From Guillardia theta CCMP2712 (lineage: Eukaryota; Protista; Cryptophyta), in assembly GCF_000315625.1 (NCBI RefSeq), contig NW_005434544.1, positions 136,244 to 184,398 of the forward strand: DNA of 48,155 nt. The letters run 5' to 3'. The notes under the pieces are model-generated. The model saw only the letters and a list, made by a program, of their open reading frames with translations, was not told where the DNA came from and did no database searches. Below, one piece after another: positions 23,834-29,735 of the stretch; within the stretch, counting starts at the first letter, position 1, and every line of letters begins with the position of its first letter. The position numbers were made by a program, and so were the translations under genes.

Positions 23834-26800
23834 ATGCAATACAAACTTGTTCTGGTCGTTTTTGCGCTGCTCTTTGCAGCAAACCTTAGCACAACCTCGG
23901 CGGCTGTGCTCAACATCTACGGAGCTGGAAGTACCTTCGTGCAGGACGTGTATGAAGGAGCTGTCTATACGTACCAGTTCGTGAACCCCAACGTGAAAGT
24001 GCACTATCACCCGACGGGATCAGGAGGAGGGTTGAAGCGTATCATGCAAGGAAGCACGATGTCGCCTGATTCGCACGGACCTCCTTACGACATCGACTTC
24101 TGTGGCTCAGACGAGATCCTGACACCTGATGACTACAAGAAGTATCCTGACATGCAGCTTTACCCTGCTATCGCAGGAGCAGTCGTTCCCATCTACAACA
24201 TCCCTGAGCTGCCAACAAATCTCGACCTGATTCTGCACATGCAGACTATCGTCGACATCTTTGCCGGGAAGATTGAGTACTGGAACCATCCCAGCATCGT
24301 CGATAACAACAAGGGAAACAATGGAGTGGACGCCATCCTGGCTACAGTCAACCAGAAGATCAAGGTGTTCGTCAGGTCTGATTCTTCCGGTACCACCGAA
24401 ATCTTCAAGAATACCCTCTCTGACGTCGACCCCATGTTCAATGTCTACTTCGGCATCGCAAACAACTCCAACACCGCCTGGAAGTCTCCCTACCTTGGCA
24501 ACAACTACACGCATGCACGCGATGGGAACCCTGGGGTGGCTTCAGGGGTAGTTGCCACACCCTACGGCATCGGTTACTCCGTGCTCAGTGACGCTGTGAG
24601 AATCGGGCTGCGCATGGCGAGCGTGGTGAAGCCAGGAAGCACGCAGGTCGTGAAGCCAACGGAAGAAGGAGTGGAGTTCGCCGTGTCGGAGAAGGGGATG
24701 GGTAGGCTACTGTCTCCTCTCTCGCACCTCCCGTGCTGACTTCCCTTGCAGACTTTGGCAACAACGGCGACAGCCCCGACCACCTGACAGCCAACGTGTT
24801 CAACGCCAAGGGTCTGCTTGCCTGGCCCATGGCTGGATACTCCTACCTTGCCATGAGGAAGGATACCATTCGCACCGGAGGGTCCTGCGAGACTCGCGCG
24901 GCGACTGTTGCTTACTGGGAGTGGTTCCATACCTCTCCTGCTGCCAACGACATCGCACGTACCCACGGCTTCTCTCCCCTGCCCATCATCGTGAGGAACA
25001 CAGTGCTTGCTCGCCTCAAGGAGGACATCCTGTGCAAGGGAGTCCCAGTGGTCAAGCCGACGCCCTTCCTCGACGTCAACCAGTCCACCATCCCTGCACT
25101 CTCTCCCTTCATGACCATCCTCTCCCAGTCCTACTCGGTCAGCGAGTCGTCAACTGCTCCCTGCCCCTCGCTGACTTAACGTGCAGGACATCAACGCGTC
25201 TGCGATGCTCGTCAACTTCGAGAACAAGAGCTCCAGCGTCTCTCTGACCTACGGCTCCAAGGACCGCGCGGGCATCTCGCTTGTTCGATCCTCCCAGTAC
25301 GTCTTGGAGTGCAGCTGTGAAGCAAGCCTGACAAACACTTCAGGTTGCCCTCCAACACCAAGTCGCAGTACATGCAGGCGCCTCTTGCTGGCGTTGTCTT
25401 CGGTCTTCTCTTCAACCTCTGCGGCAACGCCAGGCTCACGGACACGTGCAAGTACAAGAGCACAAAGATCTCCGTCAGCGCCTCCACCATCTCCAAGATC
25501 GTCAGCTCACCCACGGTGACGTGGAAGGATGTCGACCCGTCGCTTCCCCCCGAGATCCTCTCCTCCAAGCTCACCGTCCTGTGCCCGACCAAGGGCTCGG
25601 AGATGCAGACAGTGGCTACCGAGTATCTTGCGAGGGAGAACAAGTCCTTCACCATGAGCTCATGGAACTGCGGCTCCTCCAACCACTTCCTTGACACGCA
25701 GACCATCTACGGGTACGTCACTGAGCGATCAGACATCGTTGCACTCTCCTCGCTCGTCAGCCTGCCCTCGGGGCTCAACGTGGCCTCCCTCAAGAACGGA
25801 TCGGTCGGCCCCGTCGACTTCTCCCTCGTCGCTGTCATGAAATGTGCTACCCCGCAGACGCTACTGCCGGGAGGCGCCGGGTACAATCTCAACGAGGGGG
25901 ACATGTCAAAGGGCTGCTACCCCTTTGCCGAGTCGTACAGCATCATGACTCAGCTCCAGTACAAGAAGGATCTCCAGCTGAATCTCACCTGTGAAGGTAA
26001 CGACCCTGTCATCACCATGCAGGAGTACCTCGGGTGGATCTACGGGCATCCCCTAGCGACGGGCTACATCCAGGGCCTCAACTACAACTCCAGCTTGACC
26101 GGGCAGGGCCTCGCTCCCATCGCCTTCGCCGACATCCAGAAGAGCCACCAGCTCGTGCAAGCCATCTCCTGCGACGGGTTTAGCCTCCTCAACCCCTCCT
26201 CCCTCCAGCCCAACACGACTGCCTACATCCTCCTCGGAGCCGTCCTCTTCGTCGCCGCTCTCCTCCTCGGCTCCATCATGTTCGCCGTGCGCAGCGGCAA
26301 GGTAGACATCAACAAGGTGCTCGCAGCCGTCTTCGCCGAGGTGATAGCGTACATCTCATGCCAGCGCAGCAGCTGACGAGTTTGCGCAGGAGATCTGCAT
26401 CCTTTCTGACTGCGTTATCAACGTGGCCGACGTTCTCTCCTTCATGCTCACCATCATCATCAACGTCGTCGGCAGGTTTGGCGCTTGTGCTGATGTGTCA
26501 GCGGCAGCTGGGGAAGGGGGAGCTGAACGTTTTCCCGCAGCAAGAGCCTGATCAACATCCTTCCCGTCTGTATCCTCTGCTCGGCCGCCAGCTGGATCGC
26601 GACCTTCTCGACGCTGCGACTTTCGTTCCTGCAGTTCAAGCACATCATGATCCAGAGGGACAAGAACAAGCACGACCACTTCATCATGAAGCACACCAAG
26701 AACGTCATCGACGACATGTACCCCGAGACAAAGAAGCTGAGGAAGGAGACGTCCACCTCCTCCCGCATCTCCCCCTCCCCCGTCCCCGAGGACCCGGAGA

Positions 26801-27603
26801 TCGCCATGCTCGAGAAGAAGATTTTCCGTCACTTCACCGTCCTGCGCGAGAGTTCCACCACCATGGGCAACATCAGCAGCCTGGACCTCCTGGAGGACCT
26901 GCAGCGCGAGGCTGCGCGTCTCAAGGGCGATCTCTTCATGGTGGCGTTCGAAGTTGTTCCTACCGCAGCTCTCTCGCTCAAGATCATGCTCACGCTCGAG
27001 CAGACCTCAGCTGTCAACTTGGCCTCCCTGCTCCTCTCCACCGTCGTCTTTGGCATGAAGACCAGCGGCCTGTCTACCTACCCGTCGCTCCTTCGCGATA
27101 TCAACAGAGAGAAGTAAGTCTCCCATCTCTCTCCTTCTCCCCTCCTTCTCCCCTCCTTCTCCTCTTCTCTCCCCTCTTCTCCCCTCCTTCTCTTCTTCTC
27201 TCCCCTCTTCTCCCCTCCTTCTCTCCTTCTCCTTCCCTTCTTCTCCCTGCTCTCTTTCCCTTCTCTTCTGTCCTCCACCTTGTCTCCTCCCTCCTCTTTT
27301 CTCTCGTCTCCCCTTCTCCCTTCCCTCTCTTCCTCTCCTCTCTTCCCGGTCTTGACTTTCCTTCCCTCCTCCATCCATTCACTCTCCTCACTTCTTCTTT
27401 GCAGGATCCTCATTGCCAACGAAGTCAGGATGCTCATGGACGACGTGAAGAACGACCTTGTCATGCCCATCACAGTCTCCGTGGAGGGCAAGCAGGAGGC
27501 GAGCACAGCAGGGGCAGCAGTGAGGCACGAAGTCGACCTATCCAGCACTCCAGTCAGGATGGAGGGAATGTCGGCAGTGGTGCCAGGACCAGGAGCAGAG
27601 TGA
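23834..27603 (+). CDS. Signal peptide + PstS phosphate-binding domain + degenerate second PBP domain + ~5 TM segments (candidate phosphate sensor/receptor)
   Basis: Signal peptide MQYKLVLVVFALLFAA; PstS motifs GAGSTF, TGSGGG, IDFCGSD, GAVVPIYN, IFAGKIEYWN, RSDSSGTT, GNPGV, GIGY and AWPMAGYSY; then a second PBP-like region (~25190-26180) and hydrophobic helices at 26220-27060. Introns are in phase and TGA is at 27601-27603. Confidence 0.85.
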
Positions 27604-27908
27604 ATATGTGGTTTTTATCTTATAGATTGATCGGCATTGATGTTGTTGAATTGTTAAGTTTGTGTTGAATTTTCAAGCGTGTATATACAAGCATACAAGC
27701 TTTTACCCTAATCTATGTATCCTCCTCCTCTTTCACCAGCTCCTCCTCCTCCTCCTCCTCCTCCTCCTCCTCCGCNNNNNNNNNNNNNNNNNNNNNNNNN
27801 NNNNNNNNNNNNNNNNNNNNNNNNNNNNNNNNNNNNNNNNNNNNNNNNNNNNNNNNNNNNNNNNNNNNNNNNNNNGCGTCAGACGCGTCGACTCCTAGCT
27901 GATATCAC

Positions 27909-29735
27909 CTTGAACTTGCGGTAAACCTTGGCAGACTTCCAGTCCCACAGCCAAAGTCGACCTAGCAAACCAGTGAGAAGGGAAACGAGCGAAAGAATGG
28001 AGGAGGAGGAGGAGGAGGAGGAGGAGGAGGAGGAGGAGGAGGAGGAGGAGGAGGAGGAGGAGGAGGAGGAAGAGAGGAGGAGGAGGATAAGGATGAGGAA
28101 GAGGAGGAGGAGGAGGAGAGTGCAGGAAACGCACCATCTCCATCGCCACTGAGGACGTACTTGAGATCGGGCGAAACTCCAACCTGACAGAACACTCAGC
28201 AAACCTGCAAACCATCTCATCGCAACGTGACTCCACCTGGCATGCGTATCCAGCGATCGTGTGCCCCACGAAGAGCTTCTTCTTGTTCAACTTGAACCTG
28301 CGCGACCGTCAAGCACGGGAGGCAGCGCTGGCCGGCCTTACCTGTCTCCACTCATGTAGCACAGGATCTGGTTGTCCAGCGACTGACACAGCAGGTACTT
28401 GGGGTTGCCGTTGTCGAAGGGGGCGGCGGTGACTGCGGGCATGGCATGCATCCAGGGTTCGCTGATGTGCTTCATGGGAGCGGTACCGATGCCGTACTCC
28501 CAGAGGAAGAGCTTCTTGTCGTCGGCCGTCGACACGACCCTCCTGTTCCCGTCGATGAAGGTAACGGTATTGACGGCGCCGAGGTGCTGGATGTACTCTT
28601 GCACCAGCGAGCTCCTGTTGGGGTGCCTTGGGTCCCACTGCAGGATGTTCTTGCAGGAAGAGCCTGCGAGGATGTTGTCGTCGCCTGGATGGATCTTCAC
28701 CGAGTATGGGATACCCTTTGACCTCCAGCTCTTCAGGCAAGTCCCAGTCTCTGTGTCCCAGTACCGCACGACCTTGTCGTAGCCGACGGACGCGAACTGC
28801 CTGCCATCGGTAGAGAAGCAAATGTCTCTCACGGCCTTCTGATGACCCATGTAAGTGCGGAGAGTCTTGCGATTGTTGTAAACATCCCAGATCTTGATCT
28901 TGCAGTCCATGGAAGCAGAGAGCAGCAGATGGCCTGTCTTGGGGAACCAGCGGATCGCCTGAACTCCCTTGGTATGACCAGACCAGGTGTGAACGGAGAC
29001 TTTGGGAATGTAGGATTGAGGCTCAACCGCCTTGATGTCGGTCGGCGCATCGATCCAAGTTCGACCCTGGTAATCCTTTGTCTCCTTTCCATGAAAGATG
29101 CTCGAGGCCTCAAAGATGGAGACCTCTGCCTTCTCCTTCACCGTCTCGGCTGCTTCCTTGGCCGCCTTCTCCGCCTCTTCGATGGCCTTCACGTCCTGAG
29201 CCATCTCCGCAGCTTCCTCTGACGTCATCGCAGTGCCCAGACCAGCGAGCACCTGTTCAGCTGCCGAGTCGTCAAGCTTCCTCTTCTTCGCATCACGCTT
29301 GGTGGCCTGATGGACAGTCCTCCCCTGCATCAGGTTCCATGCCGAACGGTCGCCGACTATGTTGGAGCCGAACATGCTGTCGTTAGCGGCCGAAGGGTCC
29401 ATCGCGAACCCGAAGGTGTTGAAGGTTTGGTGCTGCTCTTCGAAGTGAAAATCTGCCACGTTGGTTCGCTCGATGAAGCCCCCCAGCGTGTTCCGCATGC
29501 CTGGAGTGATGCCGTTCTGGTAGTAGGGGTTGGACGGCCCGGCCTCGGGGGTCCACAGAGCCTCGTAGGAGGGGTTGTAGGTGACCATCTTGGAGTTGTT
29601 CGCCACCATCTTTTGAGTCTCGCTCGTGAGATCTGCCTTGCCCACATCGGGAGCCGCTTGCACTGTGATGGCAAGTGAGCCCTGAGACTTGGACTTGTTG
29701 TCCTCATCCGATCCGTATCCGAACACTGCGTCCAT
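27909..29735 (-). CDS. CDC40: Pre-mRNA-processing factor 17 (WD40); last exon probably lost in gap 27776-27875
   Basis: HTWSGHTKGVQAIRWFPKTGHLLLSASMDCKIKIWDVYNNRKTLRTYMGH, QEYIQHLGAVNTVTF, HISEPWMHAMP, CQSLDNQI, KKLFVGHTIAGYACQ, SPDLKYVLSGDGDG and LWLWDWKS. Confidence 0.96.

Follow-up and report, generated by a model that had tools for sequence, protein, structure and literature searches.

How eukaryotic phytoplankton perceive external phosphate is a question to which, to our knowledge, no molecular basis is known. In diatoms starved of phosphorus, phosphate is described as evoking rapid Ca2+ signals, for which we know of no receptor. A gene of the cryptophyte Guillardia theta CCMP2712 bears on this question; it lies on the + strand at 23834-27603 of a 48,155-nucleotide stretch of contig NW_005434544.1 (positions 136,244 to 184,398 of the forward strand; hereafter the window, whose numbering is used throughout). 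The gene encodes a phosphate-binding domain of the bacterial PstS type (domain 1), a degenerate duplicate of it (PstS', domain 2), and a membrane module of five predicted transmembrane (TM) helices, which we refer to as 5TM. We ask whether this is one protein, whether it is likely to bind phosphate, and what its membrane part might do. By analogy with other receptors, we favour a dimeric surface receptor for external orthophosphate and put the chance of this at about even; it is favoured because both halves of the protein behave as exchangeable sensor and transducer modules.

The PstS domains and the membrane helices in one gene

The gene model has seven exons with a spliced frame that is open over 1,072 codons, matching exactly the coordinates and the intron-containing structure given in a preliminary description of the window made from the sequence alone. 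Its introns fall within domains and not at their boundaries: intron 1 splits the PstS fold itself, exon 2 holds the end of domain 1 together with the start of domain 2, and exon 4 carries the closing part of domain 2 along with the linker and TM1 (open reading frame [ORF] 25345-26376). Two paralogues run from domain 2 to the C-terminus as an uninterrupted ORF of 572 or 542 amino acids (aa), to which exons 4, 5 and 6 of the window gene align gaplessly. At the junction of exons 6 and 7 the paralogues likewise run on within a single ORF, as ...REK-RLHNEIISKVL.... Transcript P0001 of the cryptophyte Hanusia phi spans domain 2 through all five TM helices, and the junctions still left are crossed in alignments to transcripts from more distant homologues. 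In this way each of the six splice junctions is bridged, either by paralogues that lack introns or by relatives' transcripts.

These observations bear on the possibility of a gene-model artefact, in which a secreted PstS gene and an adjacent membrane-protein gene have been wrongly joined. Such an artefact could draw on a second Hanusia phi fragment, P0002, which is 83% identical to exon 4 and has the C-terminus ...AVFAEVT instead of EEICIL; it runs into the equivalent of intron 4, as an unspliced or partial transcript does. The exons that join one domain to the next, the interruption of the PstS fold by intron 1, the unbroken paralogue ORFs, the reach of P0001 and of the relatives' transcript alignments, and the recurrence of the same domain order in four paralogues and two foreign genomes all argue against it, and we consider an artefact extremely unlikely.

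Phosphate-ligand positions retained in domain 1 and lost from domain 2

Exon 1 alone matches the Pfam family PBP_like_2 (PF12849; E 3.3e-24, 86.5 bits, cut-off 27), the NCBIfam PstS model TIGR00975 (E 7.3e-39, covering profile positions 1-230 of 315) and 17 solved PstS sequences, the best at E 6e-19. When aligned with the Escherichia coli phosphate-binding protein (PBP, 1ixh_A), T34/F35 correspond to T10/F11, S63 to S38, D93 to D56, R181 to R135, D183 to D137, and S185/G186/T187 to S139/G140/T141, such that all eight E. coli phosphate-ligand positions, and D137 in addition, are retained in domain 1. It is through D56 that E. coli PBP selects protonated phosphate and not sulfate. The phosphate site of domain 1 looks intact by this alignment, and the four ligand motifs that the preliminary description had placed in a PstS domain behind a signal peptide are the right ones. 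The ligand positions are also retained in three paralogues, as read by eye from ORF translations, with D137 replaced by Glu in one. Because the PstS fold begins directly after the signal peptide, there is no space for a plastid transit peptide, and we expect the product to remain within the secretory pathway, either at the plasma membrane or in the endomembrane system.

The eukaryotic domain 1 carries insertions relative to bacterial PstS, for example at aa 72-85, its identity to bacterial PstS is low, and its TIGR00975 score of 133.7 bits lies under the equivalog cut-off of 205, a score obtained with exon 1 only and thus over about 230 of the 315 profile positions. These features would suit a ligand other than orthophosphate, such as arsenate, phosphite, phosphonate or a similar oxyanion or phosphorylated compound. 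Against this stands the retention of every E. coli phosphate-ligand position, D56 included, and we regard a different ligand as very unlikely.

The ectodomain was aligned with 15 homologues and cut at aa 395/396, and the two halves were compared profile to profile with hhalign. Because they align end to end (probability 99.0%, E 2.6e-18, 317 aligned columns), domain 2 is, by this profile comparison, a full-length PstS duplicate; it is without the ligand motifs, which are replaced by NQSTIP, ENKSSS, VRSS and CPTKGSEMQT. A second binding-protein-like domain with lost motifs (LCPTKGSEMQT) had been recognised in the preliminary description, and the alignment to domain 1 confirms it. Domain 2 matches no Pfam or NCBIfam family. 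It terminates in a conserved linker, C-D-G-x-S-L-L-N-P, which in the wider family takes the form C-[DN]-G-x-S-[IL]-L-N-P and is followed by a TM helix.

The five-helix module and its predicted dimer

Hydropathy peaks are located at about aa 750-768, 780-843 and 947-965, the second of which is broad and corresponds to TM2 and TM3 in a structural model; TM5 (aa 973-993) is derived from that model alone. The model was made with AlphaFold2 (AF2) from the membrane module of paralogue L005, which is encoded in one ORF, using a 30-row alignment, and it stands in for the window protein (pLDDT 84, pTM 0.74). In window numbering it contains TM1, a short juxtamembrane helix, TM2, TM3 at 817-855 extending into the cytosol, two cytosolic helices, TM4 at 929-967 (within the membrane from about 946), TM5 and lastly a C-terminal helix, in agreement with the layout first proposed, namely three plus two TM helices with an E..P in TM4, a charged loop and a tail. 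Because the ectodomain is outside and Lys/Arg-rich segments follow TM1 and TM3, we infer an N-out, C-in topology with the loop of about 100 aa between TM3 and TM4 in the cytosol.

Several positions within the module are strongly conserved among 28 family members. These include the TM2 Asp (D801; 26 of 28), the TM3 Pro and Trp (P824 and W834; both 28 of 28), the Pro of the TM4 E..P (P956; 28 of 28), the TM5 Gly (G987; 28 of 28) and Lys (K989; 20 of 28), and an Arg before TM4. The window protein fits the family pattern of TM1, [RK]-x-G-x-L-D, TM2 Asp, TM3 P...W, a long cytosolic loop, TM4 E..P and TM5 G-x-K, and the 5TM profile matches the window exons with E values of 2.1e-40, 1.1e-10 and 7e-3. 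Between paralogues L005 and L006 the ratio of nonsynonymous to synonymous divergence (dN/dS) is 0.14 at dS 0.61. Judged from these sequence comparisons, the module is under more constraint than a membrane anchor requires.

None of the searches linked the module to a described family. 5TM has no Pfam or NCBIfam family, and no exon, the cytosolic loop included, has a Pfam match to a catalytic domain, in keeping with the earlier statement that the gene encodes no ATPase, cyclase or kinase. The best Foldseek match of the module in the PDB has an E value of 0.35. In the ESM Atlas the best match by features reaches 0.86, below the 0.9 line, and by shape the query-normalised TM-score is at most 0.39, the higher target-normalised values belonging to short helical bundles. 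VIA-align returns only generic four-helix bundles, with XKR4 at Z 10.2 against a threshold of about 13 for helical bundles. Modelling and Foldseek searching of the TM module, as the preliminary description had proposed, thus gave five helices, in a paralogue, and no convincing solved fold.

Specific candidates were rejected in turn. A DHHC palmitoyltransferase was considered as VIA-align places Erf2 at Z 11.9 (root-mean-square deviation 2.3 over 108 residues), which is a tie with designed four-helix bundles and below the threshold; there is no DHHC Pfam match, and neither a DHHC motif nor a Cys-rich loop. The membrane part also has no Lig_chan or other Pfam match and the binding domains are uninterrupted by TM segments, which speaks against an ionotropic glutamate-receptor-like channel. 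For a class C G-protein-coupled receptor (GPCR), no 7tm_3 Pfam match was found in exons 4-7, and the AF2 paralogue model has five TM helices.

A homodimer of the L005 module was predicted with a score of 0.63 in three runs, whereas three controls scored 0.00 at best; between runs at least 71% of the contacts agree, and the pLDDT of the partner is 66. In calibration with microbial proteins, 21 of 30 solved homodimers passed the homodimer mark, as against 0 of 23 solved single chains; with eukaryotic proteins the figures were 17 of 29 and 0 of 30, respectively. The predicted interface is symmetric and centred on TM5 (interface residues 251-266 in paralogue numbering), including its invariant Gly, with contributions from TM1 and TM4. 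The location of this Gly inside the predicted interface lends mild extra support to the dimer. Both the 5TM fold and its homodimer are predictions only.

Both modules occur with other partners

A profile built from domain 2 plus 5TM returned 65 proteins in an exhaustive hidden Markov model search; they fall into two groups that match either 5TM only or domain 2 only. A search for homologous proteins with the family alignment A5 returned only Hanusia P0001, and annotated proteins of the genome itself were not among its matches.

The 5TM-only group consists of about 45 protist proteins of 400-620 aa (P0003-P0033 and others) from Geminigera cryophila (a cryptophyte), Lotharella oceanica (a chlorarachniophyte), other MMETSP and EukProt transcriptomes, and metagenomes. 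Each carries a signal peptide, and its ectodomain, about 180 aa long and well conserved, contains invariant His and Cys residues (motifs QCYLED..C.VCW, PHANIHSC..RGACTPFV.NTPGLSTHT and YTIIAH.RF) and is unrelated to PstS-PstS'; the search for the same TM module beneath other ectodomains, another proposal of the preliminary description, was therefore productive. AF2 models this ectodomain as an Ig/Fn3-like beta-sandwich (pLDDT 90) and not as a binding-protein fold. It has no Pfam family, and structural searches find only generic Ig/Fn3/macroglobulin-like sandwiches (Foldseek query-normalised TM-score about 0.3-0.4; VIA-align Z at most 8.4). Its invariant His and Cys residues could form a metal site.

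Domain 2 is always preceded by a PstS domain in the domain-2-only group, whose members are about 26-33% identical to the window ectodomain. Four of them (P0038, P0041, P0048 and P0065, the last being Hondaea GBG31271.1, named 'GABA-B receptor subunit 2') end in Pfam 7tm_3. By BLASTP, aa 21-779 of the window protein align with residues 67-854 of P0041 at 29.5% identity over 819 aa, and likewise with P0048, P0042 and P0065. Euglenid members (Euglena longa P0036, P0069 and P0043; E. gracilis P0052 and P0056) carry a single TM helix behind the PstS-PstS' ectodomain; three proteins, those of E. longa, continue into a long cytosolic tail, and the two E. gracilis sequences stop soon after the helix. 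At its end, the E. longa tail (…HGATIDKV.YD.VA.HW…GIG.G…FFVVGG…) resembles a nucleotide-cyclase catalytic fold by eye, with no Pfam match at E 0.01. The idea that 5TM is a shortened class C seven-helix (7TM) domain was rejected, as hhalign against the 7tm_3 domains of these homologues gives a probability of 0.8% and aligns only the linker and TM1.

Because the PstS-PstS' ectodomain joins 7tm_3, a single TM helix or 5TM, and 5TM joins either PstS-PstS' or the His/Cys sandwich, we interpret ectodomain and 5TM as exchangeable sensor and transducer modules.

The complete fusion also occurs elsewhere. Two exon-sized matches, P0034 and P0021, led to contigs of other eukaryotes on which the domain 1, domain 2 and 5TM profiles lie in order on one strand. 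One of these genomes, with a GC content of 67%, is represented by contigs L009-L011 from marine metagenomes (Tara/ENA; 18 contigs in all, up to 1.0 Mb), and the other, at 58% GC, by a Logan assembly (L012-L013; SRR24079474 and SRR24079482) with the same order of PstS, PstS' and 5TM at L012. Because this order is present in two other uncultured eukaryotes, the fusion is not confined to a single genome. Of the three contigs shown for the 67%-GC carrier, at least two come from marine (Tara Oceans) samples, and the 1.0-Mb contig has 284x coverage; this carrier may be an abundant picoeukaryote. On contig L009, a neighbouring 609-aa ORF matches only unnamed metagenome proteins.

Four paralogues and no PstC/PstA-type permease in the genome

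The genome (87.1 Mb, 669 contigs) contains just four genes that match the 5TM profile, the window gene and three paralogues with the same order of parts, and these are also its four best PBP_like_2 matches. Two weaker PBP_like_2 matches lie at G000:C69:44204-44533 and G000:C54:489342-489707, both on the - strand (E about 3e-8 and 4e-8). Paralogue L007 (L007:5300-5520; G000:C11, - strand) has a one-base frameshift just after GWMFGHPSAVG, past which the other frame reads EFTHIDYAAPLQK..., as in the intact Hanusia orthologue P0001; the frameshift is either an assembly error or the mark of a young pseudogene.

A six-frame search of the whole genome found no PstC/PstA-type permease (BPD_transp_1, PF00528), with 14 of 14 control genomes positive, which extends to the genome the absence of pstCAB that had been noted for the window. 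A partner PstCAB system for domain 1 was rejected on this ground; because there is no BPD_transp_1 match, we view domain 1 as a PstS homologue and not as a subunit of a Pst system. A 7tm_3 search of the genome also gave no match, in a search that had no working positive control.

A candidate receptor for external phosphate

In the proposed dimeric receptor, phosphate would close the cleft of domain 1, and this motion would be relayed to TM1 by way of the ligand-dead domain 2 and the C-D-G-x-S-L-L-N-P linker. From there the signal could reach the four-helix bundle of TM2-TM5 and the cytosolic helices of the TM3-TM4 loop and the C-terminus, and then a partner protein. GABA-B receptors pair a ligand-binding clamshell with a ligand-dead one, on two chains, and domain 2 might similarly act as a relay or pseudo-partner. 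In support of a receptor, the same ectodomain is found elsewhere on 7tm_3 and one-TM proteins, where it serves signalling modules. The preliminary description had suggested an undescribed phosphate sensor or gated transporter; its architecture, and its reading of a receptor ectodomain on a multipass module, stand now that both modules are seen to swap, and 'undescribed' holds only by half (see below).

Several points weigh against a receptor. Its phosphate binding, surface location, signalling direction and output are things that we infer. The Hanusia transcripts cover domain 2 onwards only and are not full length. The dimer score is a model value from a paralogue about 40% identical to the window protein, and the conserved intramembrane Asp and Glu are compatible with an ion path too. 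Finally, 5TM has neither a recognisable signalling domain nor a convincing structural relative in the Pfam, Foldseek, Atlas and VIA-align searches; because of this, the term 'receptor' rests on analogy through domain swapping.

An alternative explanation is a binding-protein-gated channel or transporter, in which the 5TM dimer is the path for phosphate, protons or cations and the protein is a eukaryotic replacement for PstCAB. This is consistent with a genome that has four PstS domains competent to bind ligand, by sequence, and no PstC/PstA, and with the conservation of an acidic residue at mid-TM2, of the TM4 E..P and of the TM5 Lys. The predicted homodimer suits such a path, and the metal-site-like character of the sister His/Cys ectodomain would give 5TM a general role as partner in nutrient binding. 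It is more difficult to reconcile with five helices per protomer that have no internal repeat and no channel or transporter match in Pfam, NCBIfam, Foldseek or VIA-align, with the lack of an energy-coupling domain, and with the presence of the same ectodomain on GPCR-type 7TM domains, which do not transport. We consider gated transport unlikely, if worth keeping in view.

Transferrin and phytotransferrin (ISIP2a) capture nutrients with type-II binding-protein lobes exposed on the cell, which in transferrin form a tandem. Tandem type-II lobes on a membrane anchor are a known plan, and the window protein could be a tethered scavenger or endocytic capture receptor in which PstS concentrates phosphate, or carries it inward as phytotransferrin does iron, and 5TM serves as anchor and in trafficking. 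The retention of the ligand site by four paralogues agrees with such a role. So does a 2025 preprint in which eukaryote-assigned 'pstS' transcripts were used as phosphorus-stress markers in a field metatranscriptome and behaved as such (10.1101/2025.04.09.648040); this use fits a role in phosphorus physiology and is silent on the PstS-PstS'-5TM architecture. Capture alone would be served by one TM helix, and the invariant Pro, Trp and Gly, the charged intramembrane positions and the structured cytosolic domain have nonetheless been kept from cryptophytes to chlorarachniophytes; furthermore, the loss of the domain 2 site means that capacity is not doubled. We think it improbable, to about the same degree as gated transport, that capture is the function.

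Returning to the dimeric receptor, a bolder form of it would have PstS-PstS'-5TM proteins act as external phosphate receptors of marine algae in which the 5TM dimer is a new ligand-gated ion path, for protons or cations by way of the bundle with the conserved Asp and Glu, that gives an electrical or Ca2+ signal; the sister ectodomain would do likewise for a second nutrient, perhaps a metal. The combination is decidedly unlikely to hold in full.

Under the receptor reading, the PstS-PstS'-5TM family offers clonable and testable candidates for a sensor of outside phosphate in marine algae. The chemistry of the ligand domain is understood to the residue. Other protists join that domain to a GPCR domain; cryptophytes and two uncultured eukaryotes, of which at least one is marine, join it to a hitherto undescribed 5TM module with a predicted dimer. 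The module itself is newly defined here and pairs with at least two different ectodomains.

Gene structure and flanking sequence

The coordinates of the gene and its parts are given in Table 1. All six introns are GT-AG. Five are 47-65 nt long, and four of these have a CTGAC branch motif about 12-14 nt upstream of the AG; intron 6 is 291 nt of almost pure CT-rich low-complexity sequence. When intron 6 is left unspliced, a TAA directly follows the last exon 6 codon (27112-27119 reads GAG AAG TAA), placing the stop right after TM5 and a short linker and omitting the 66-aa tail. Were this intron to be retained, the product would be a natural short isoform.

Table 1. Parts of the PstS-PstS'-5TM gene, in window coordinates.
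Feature	Coordinates	Strand	Basis
Exons 1-7	23834-24701, 24752-25137, 25187-25296, 25344-26340, 26390-26475, 26541-27113, 27405-27603	+	ORF map and raw sequence
Introns 1, 2, 3 and 6	24702-24751, 25138-25186, 25297-25343, 27114-27404	+	
Start codon and predicted signal peptide, aa 1-23, MQYKLVLVVFALLFAANLSTTSA	23834-23902	+	Hydropathy peak aa 5-23; E. coli mature residue 4 aligned to aa 28
Domain 1, PstS-type, aa 24-395, split by intron 1	23903-25068	+	PF12849, TIGR00975, PDB PstS matches, mapping to 1ixh_A
Domain 2, degenerate PstS duplicate, aa 396-745, split by introns 2 and 3	25069-26214	+	hhalign against domain 1
TM1, aa 747-771 (746-771 in the AF2 model), sharing its exon with the end of domain 2, then cytosolic RSGKVD	26218-26292	+	Strongest hydropathy peak (2.71); paralogue AF2 helix 19-44; alignment
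Exon 5: TM2, aa ~787-813, with conserved intramembrane D801	26390-26475	+	Gapless alignment to intron-free paralogue ORFs; AF2 helix 60-86
TM3, aa ~817-841, with invariant P824 and W834	26542-26616	+	AF2 helix 90-128; conservation
Cytosolic loop, aa 842-945, Lys/His-rich, two predicted helices, low-complexity Ser/Pro stretch	26617-26928	+	AF2 helices 130-151 and 170-195, lower pLDDT between
TM4, aa 946-967 (FEVVPT, E953, invariant P956), and TM5, aa 973-993 (invariant G987, K989)	26929-27072	+	AF2 helices 201-239 and 245-265
Exon 7: cytosolic C-terminal helix, low-confidence tail, stop codon	27405-27603	+	Sequence, frame, paralogue ORFs

Just 3' of the gene (27730-27960), a 100-N assembly gap (27776-27875) separates CCT/CTC triplet repeats from long GAG/GAA triplet repeats, because of which the 3' untranslated and intergenic regions are incompletely assembled. 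The convergent neighbour at 28338-29735 (- strand) is a single 465-aa ORF that resembles a WD40-repeat protein by eye.

Comparison with known systems

The closest ectodomain relatives are the PBP_like_2 plus 7tm_3 proteins. Hondaea GBG31271.1 and homologues from MMETSP and metagenomes have the same PstS-PstS' ectodomain, linker and first TM helix, at about 30% identity over about 750-800 aa; for the proteins of Spizellomyces (SPPG_06488) and Plasmodiophora brassicae the likeness is known by the Pfam domain pair only. All of these cross the membrane by a class C GPCR 7TM domain, to which 5TM is not homologous beyond the linker and TM1. Krishnan et al. (2012; PMC3251606) reported PBP_like_2 on a glutamate-family GPCR of Spizellomyces, and Rolfe et al. 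(2016; PMC4815078) described the Plasmodiophora 7tm_3 plus PBP_like_2 proteins as novel putative transporters; neither includes functional work, notes a duplicated domain or contains a 5TM module. Literature searches found nothing on PstS in cryptophytes, nothing relevant for PstS with a class C GPCR, and no phosphate-starvation transcriptome of Guillardia. The 5TM module and its fusion to PstS-PstS' appear to be undescribed in the literature searched, and to that extent the novelty first claimed stands; the pairing of PBP_like_2 with 7tm_3 had already been noted in Spizellomyces and Plasmodiophora.

The His/Cys sandwich plus 5TM family (for example, Geminigera cryophila EP00277_P005413 and Lotharella oceanica A0A7S2XFV7) resembles the window protein from TM1 through the C-terminal helix, where the 5TM module and its invariant positions are the same, although its ectodomain is an Ig/Fn3-like sandwich of about 180 aa and not PstS. 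Class C GPCRs such as GABA-B, mGlu and CaSR resemble the window protein in having a clamshell ectodomain of binding-protein fold on a multipass domain, and in being probably dimeric, as predicted from the 5TM module of a paralogue. They differ in that their clamshell is of type I (ANF_receptor) and their seven helices couple to G proteins, whereas the window protein has type-II PstS clamshells, both in one chain, and five unrelated helices. Phytotransferrin is held by a single-pass anchor, and its ligand is iron, bound together with a synergistic anion, whereas the window protein keeps a phosphate site, to judge from its ligand positions, and has the conserved 5TM module, a predicted dimer, as its anchor.

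Bacterial PstS itself (E. coli PBP, PDB 1ixh) is homologous to domain 1, which has the ligand positions and an upstream signal peptide. It is free or lipid-anchored, whereas the window PstS is fused to a dead duplicate and to 5TM, is encoded in a gene with six introns, and resides in a genome that has no PstC/PstA. A subunit of a bacterial transporter would thus have been reused as part of a candidate eukaryotic receptor, with the transporter itself either lost or never acquired.

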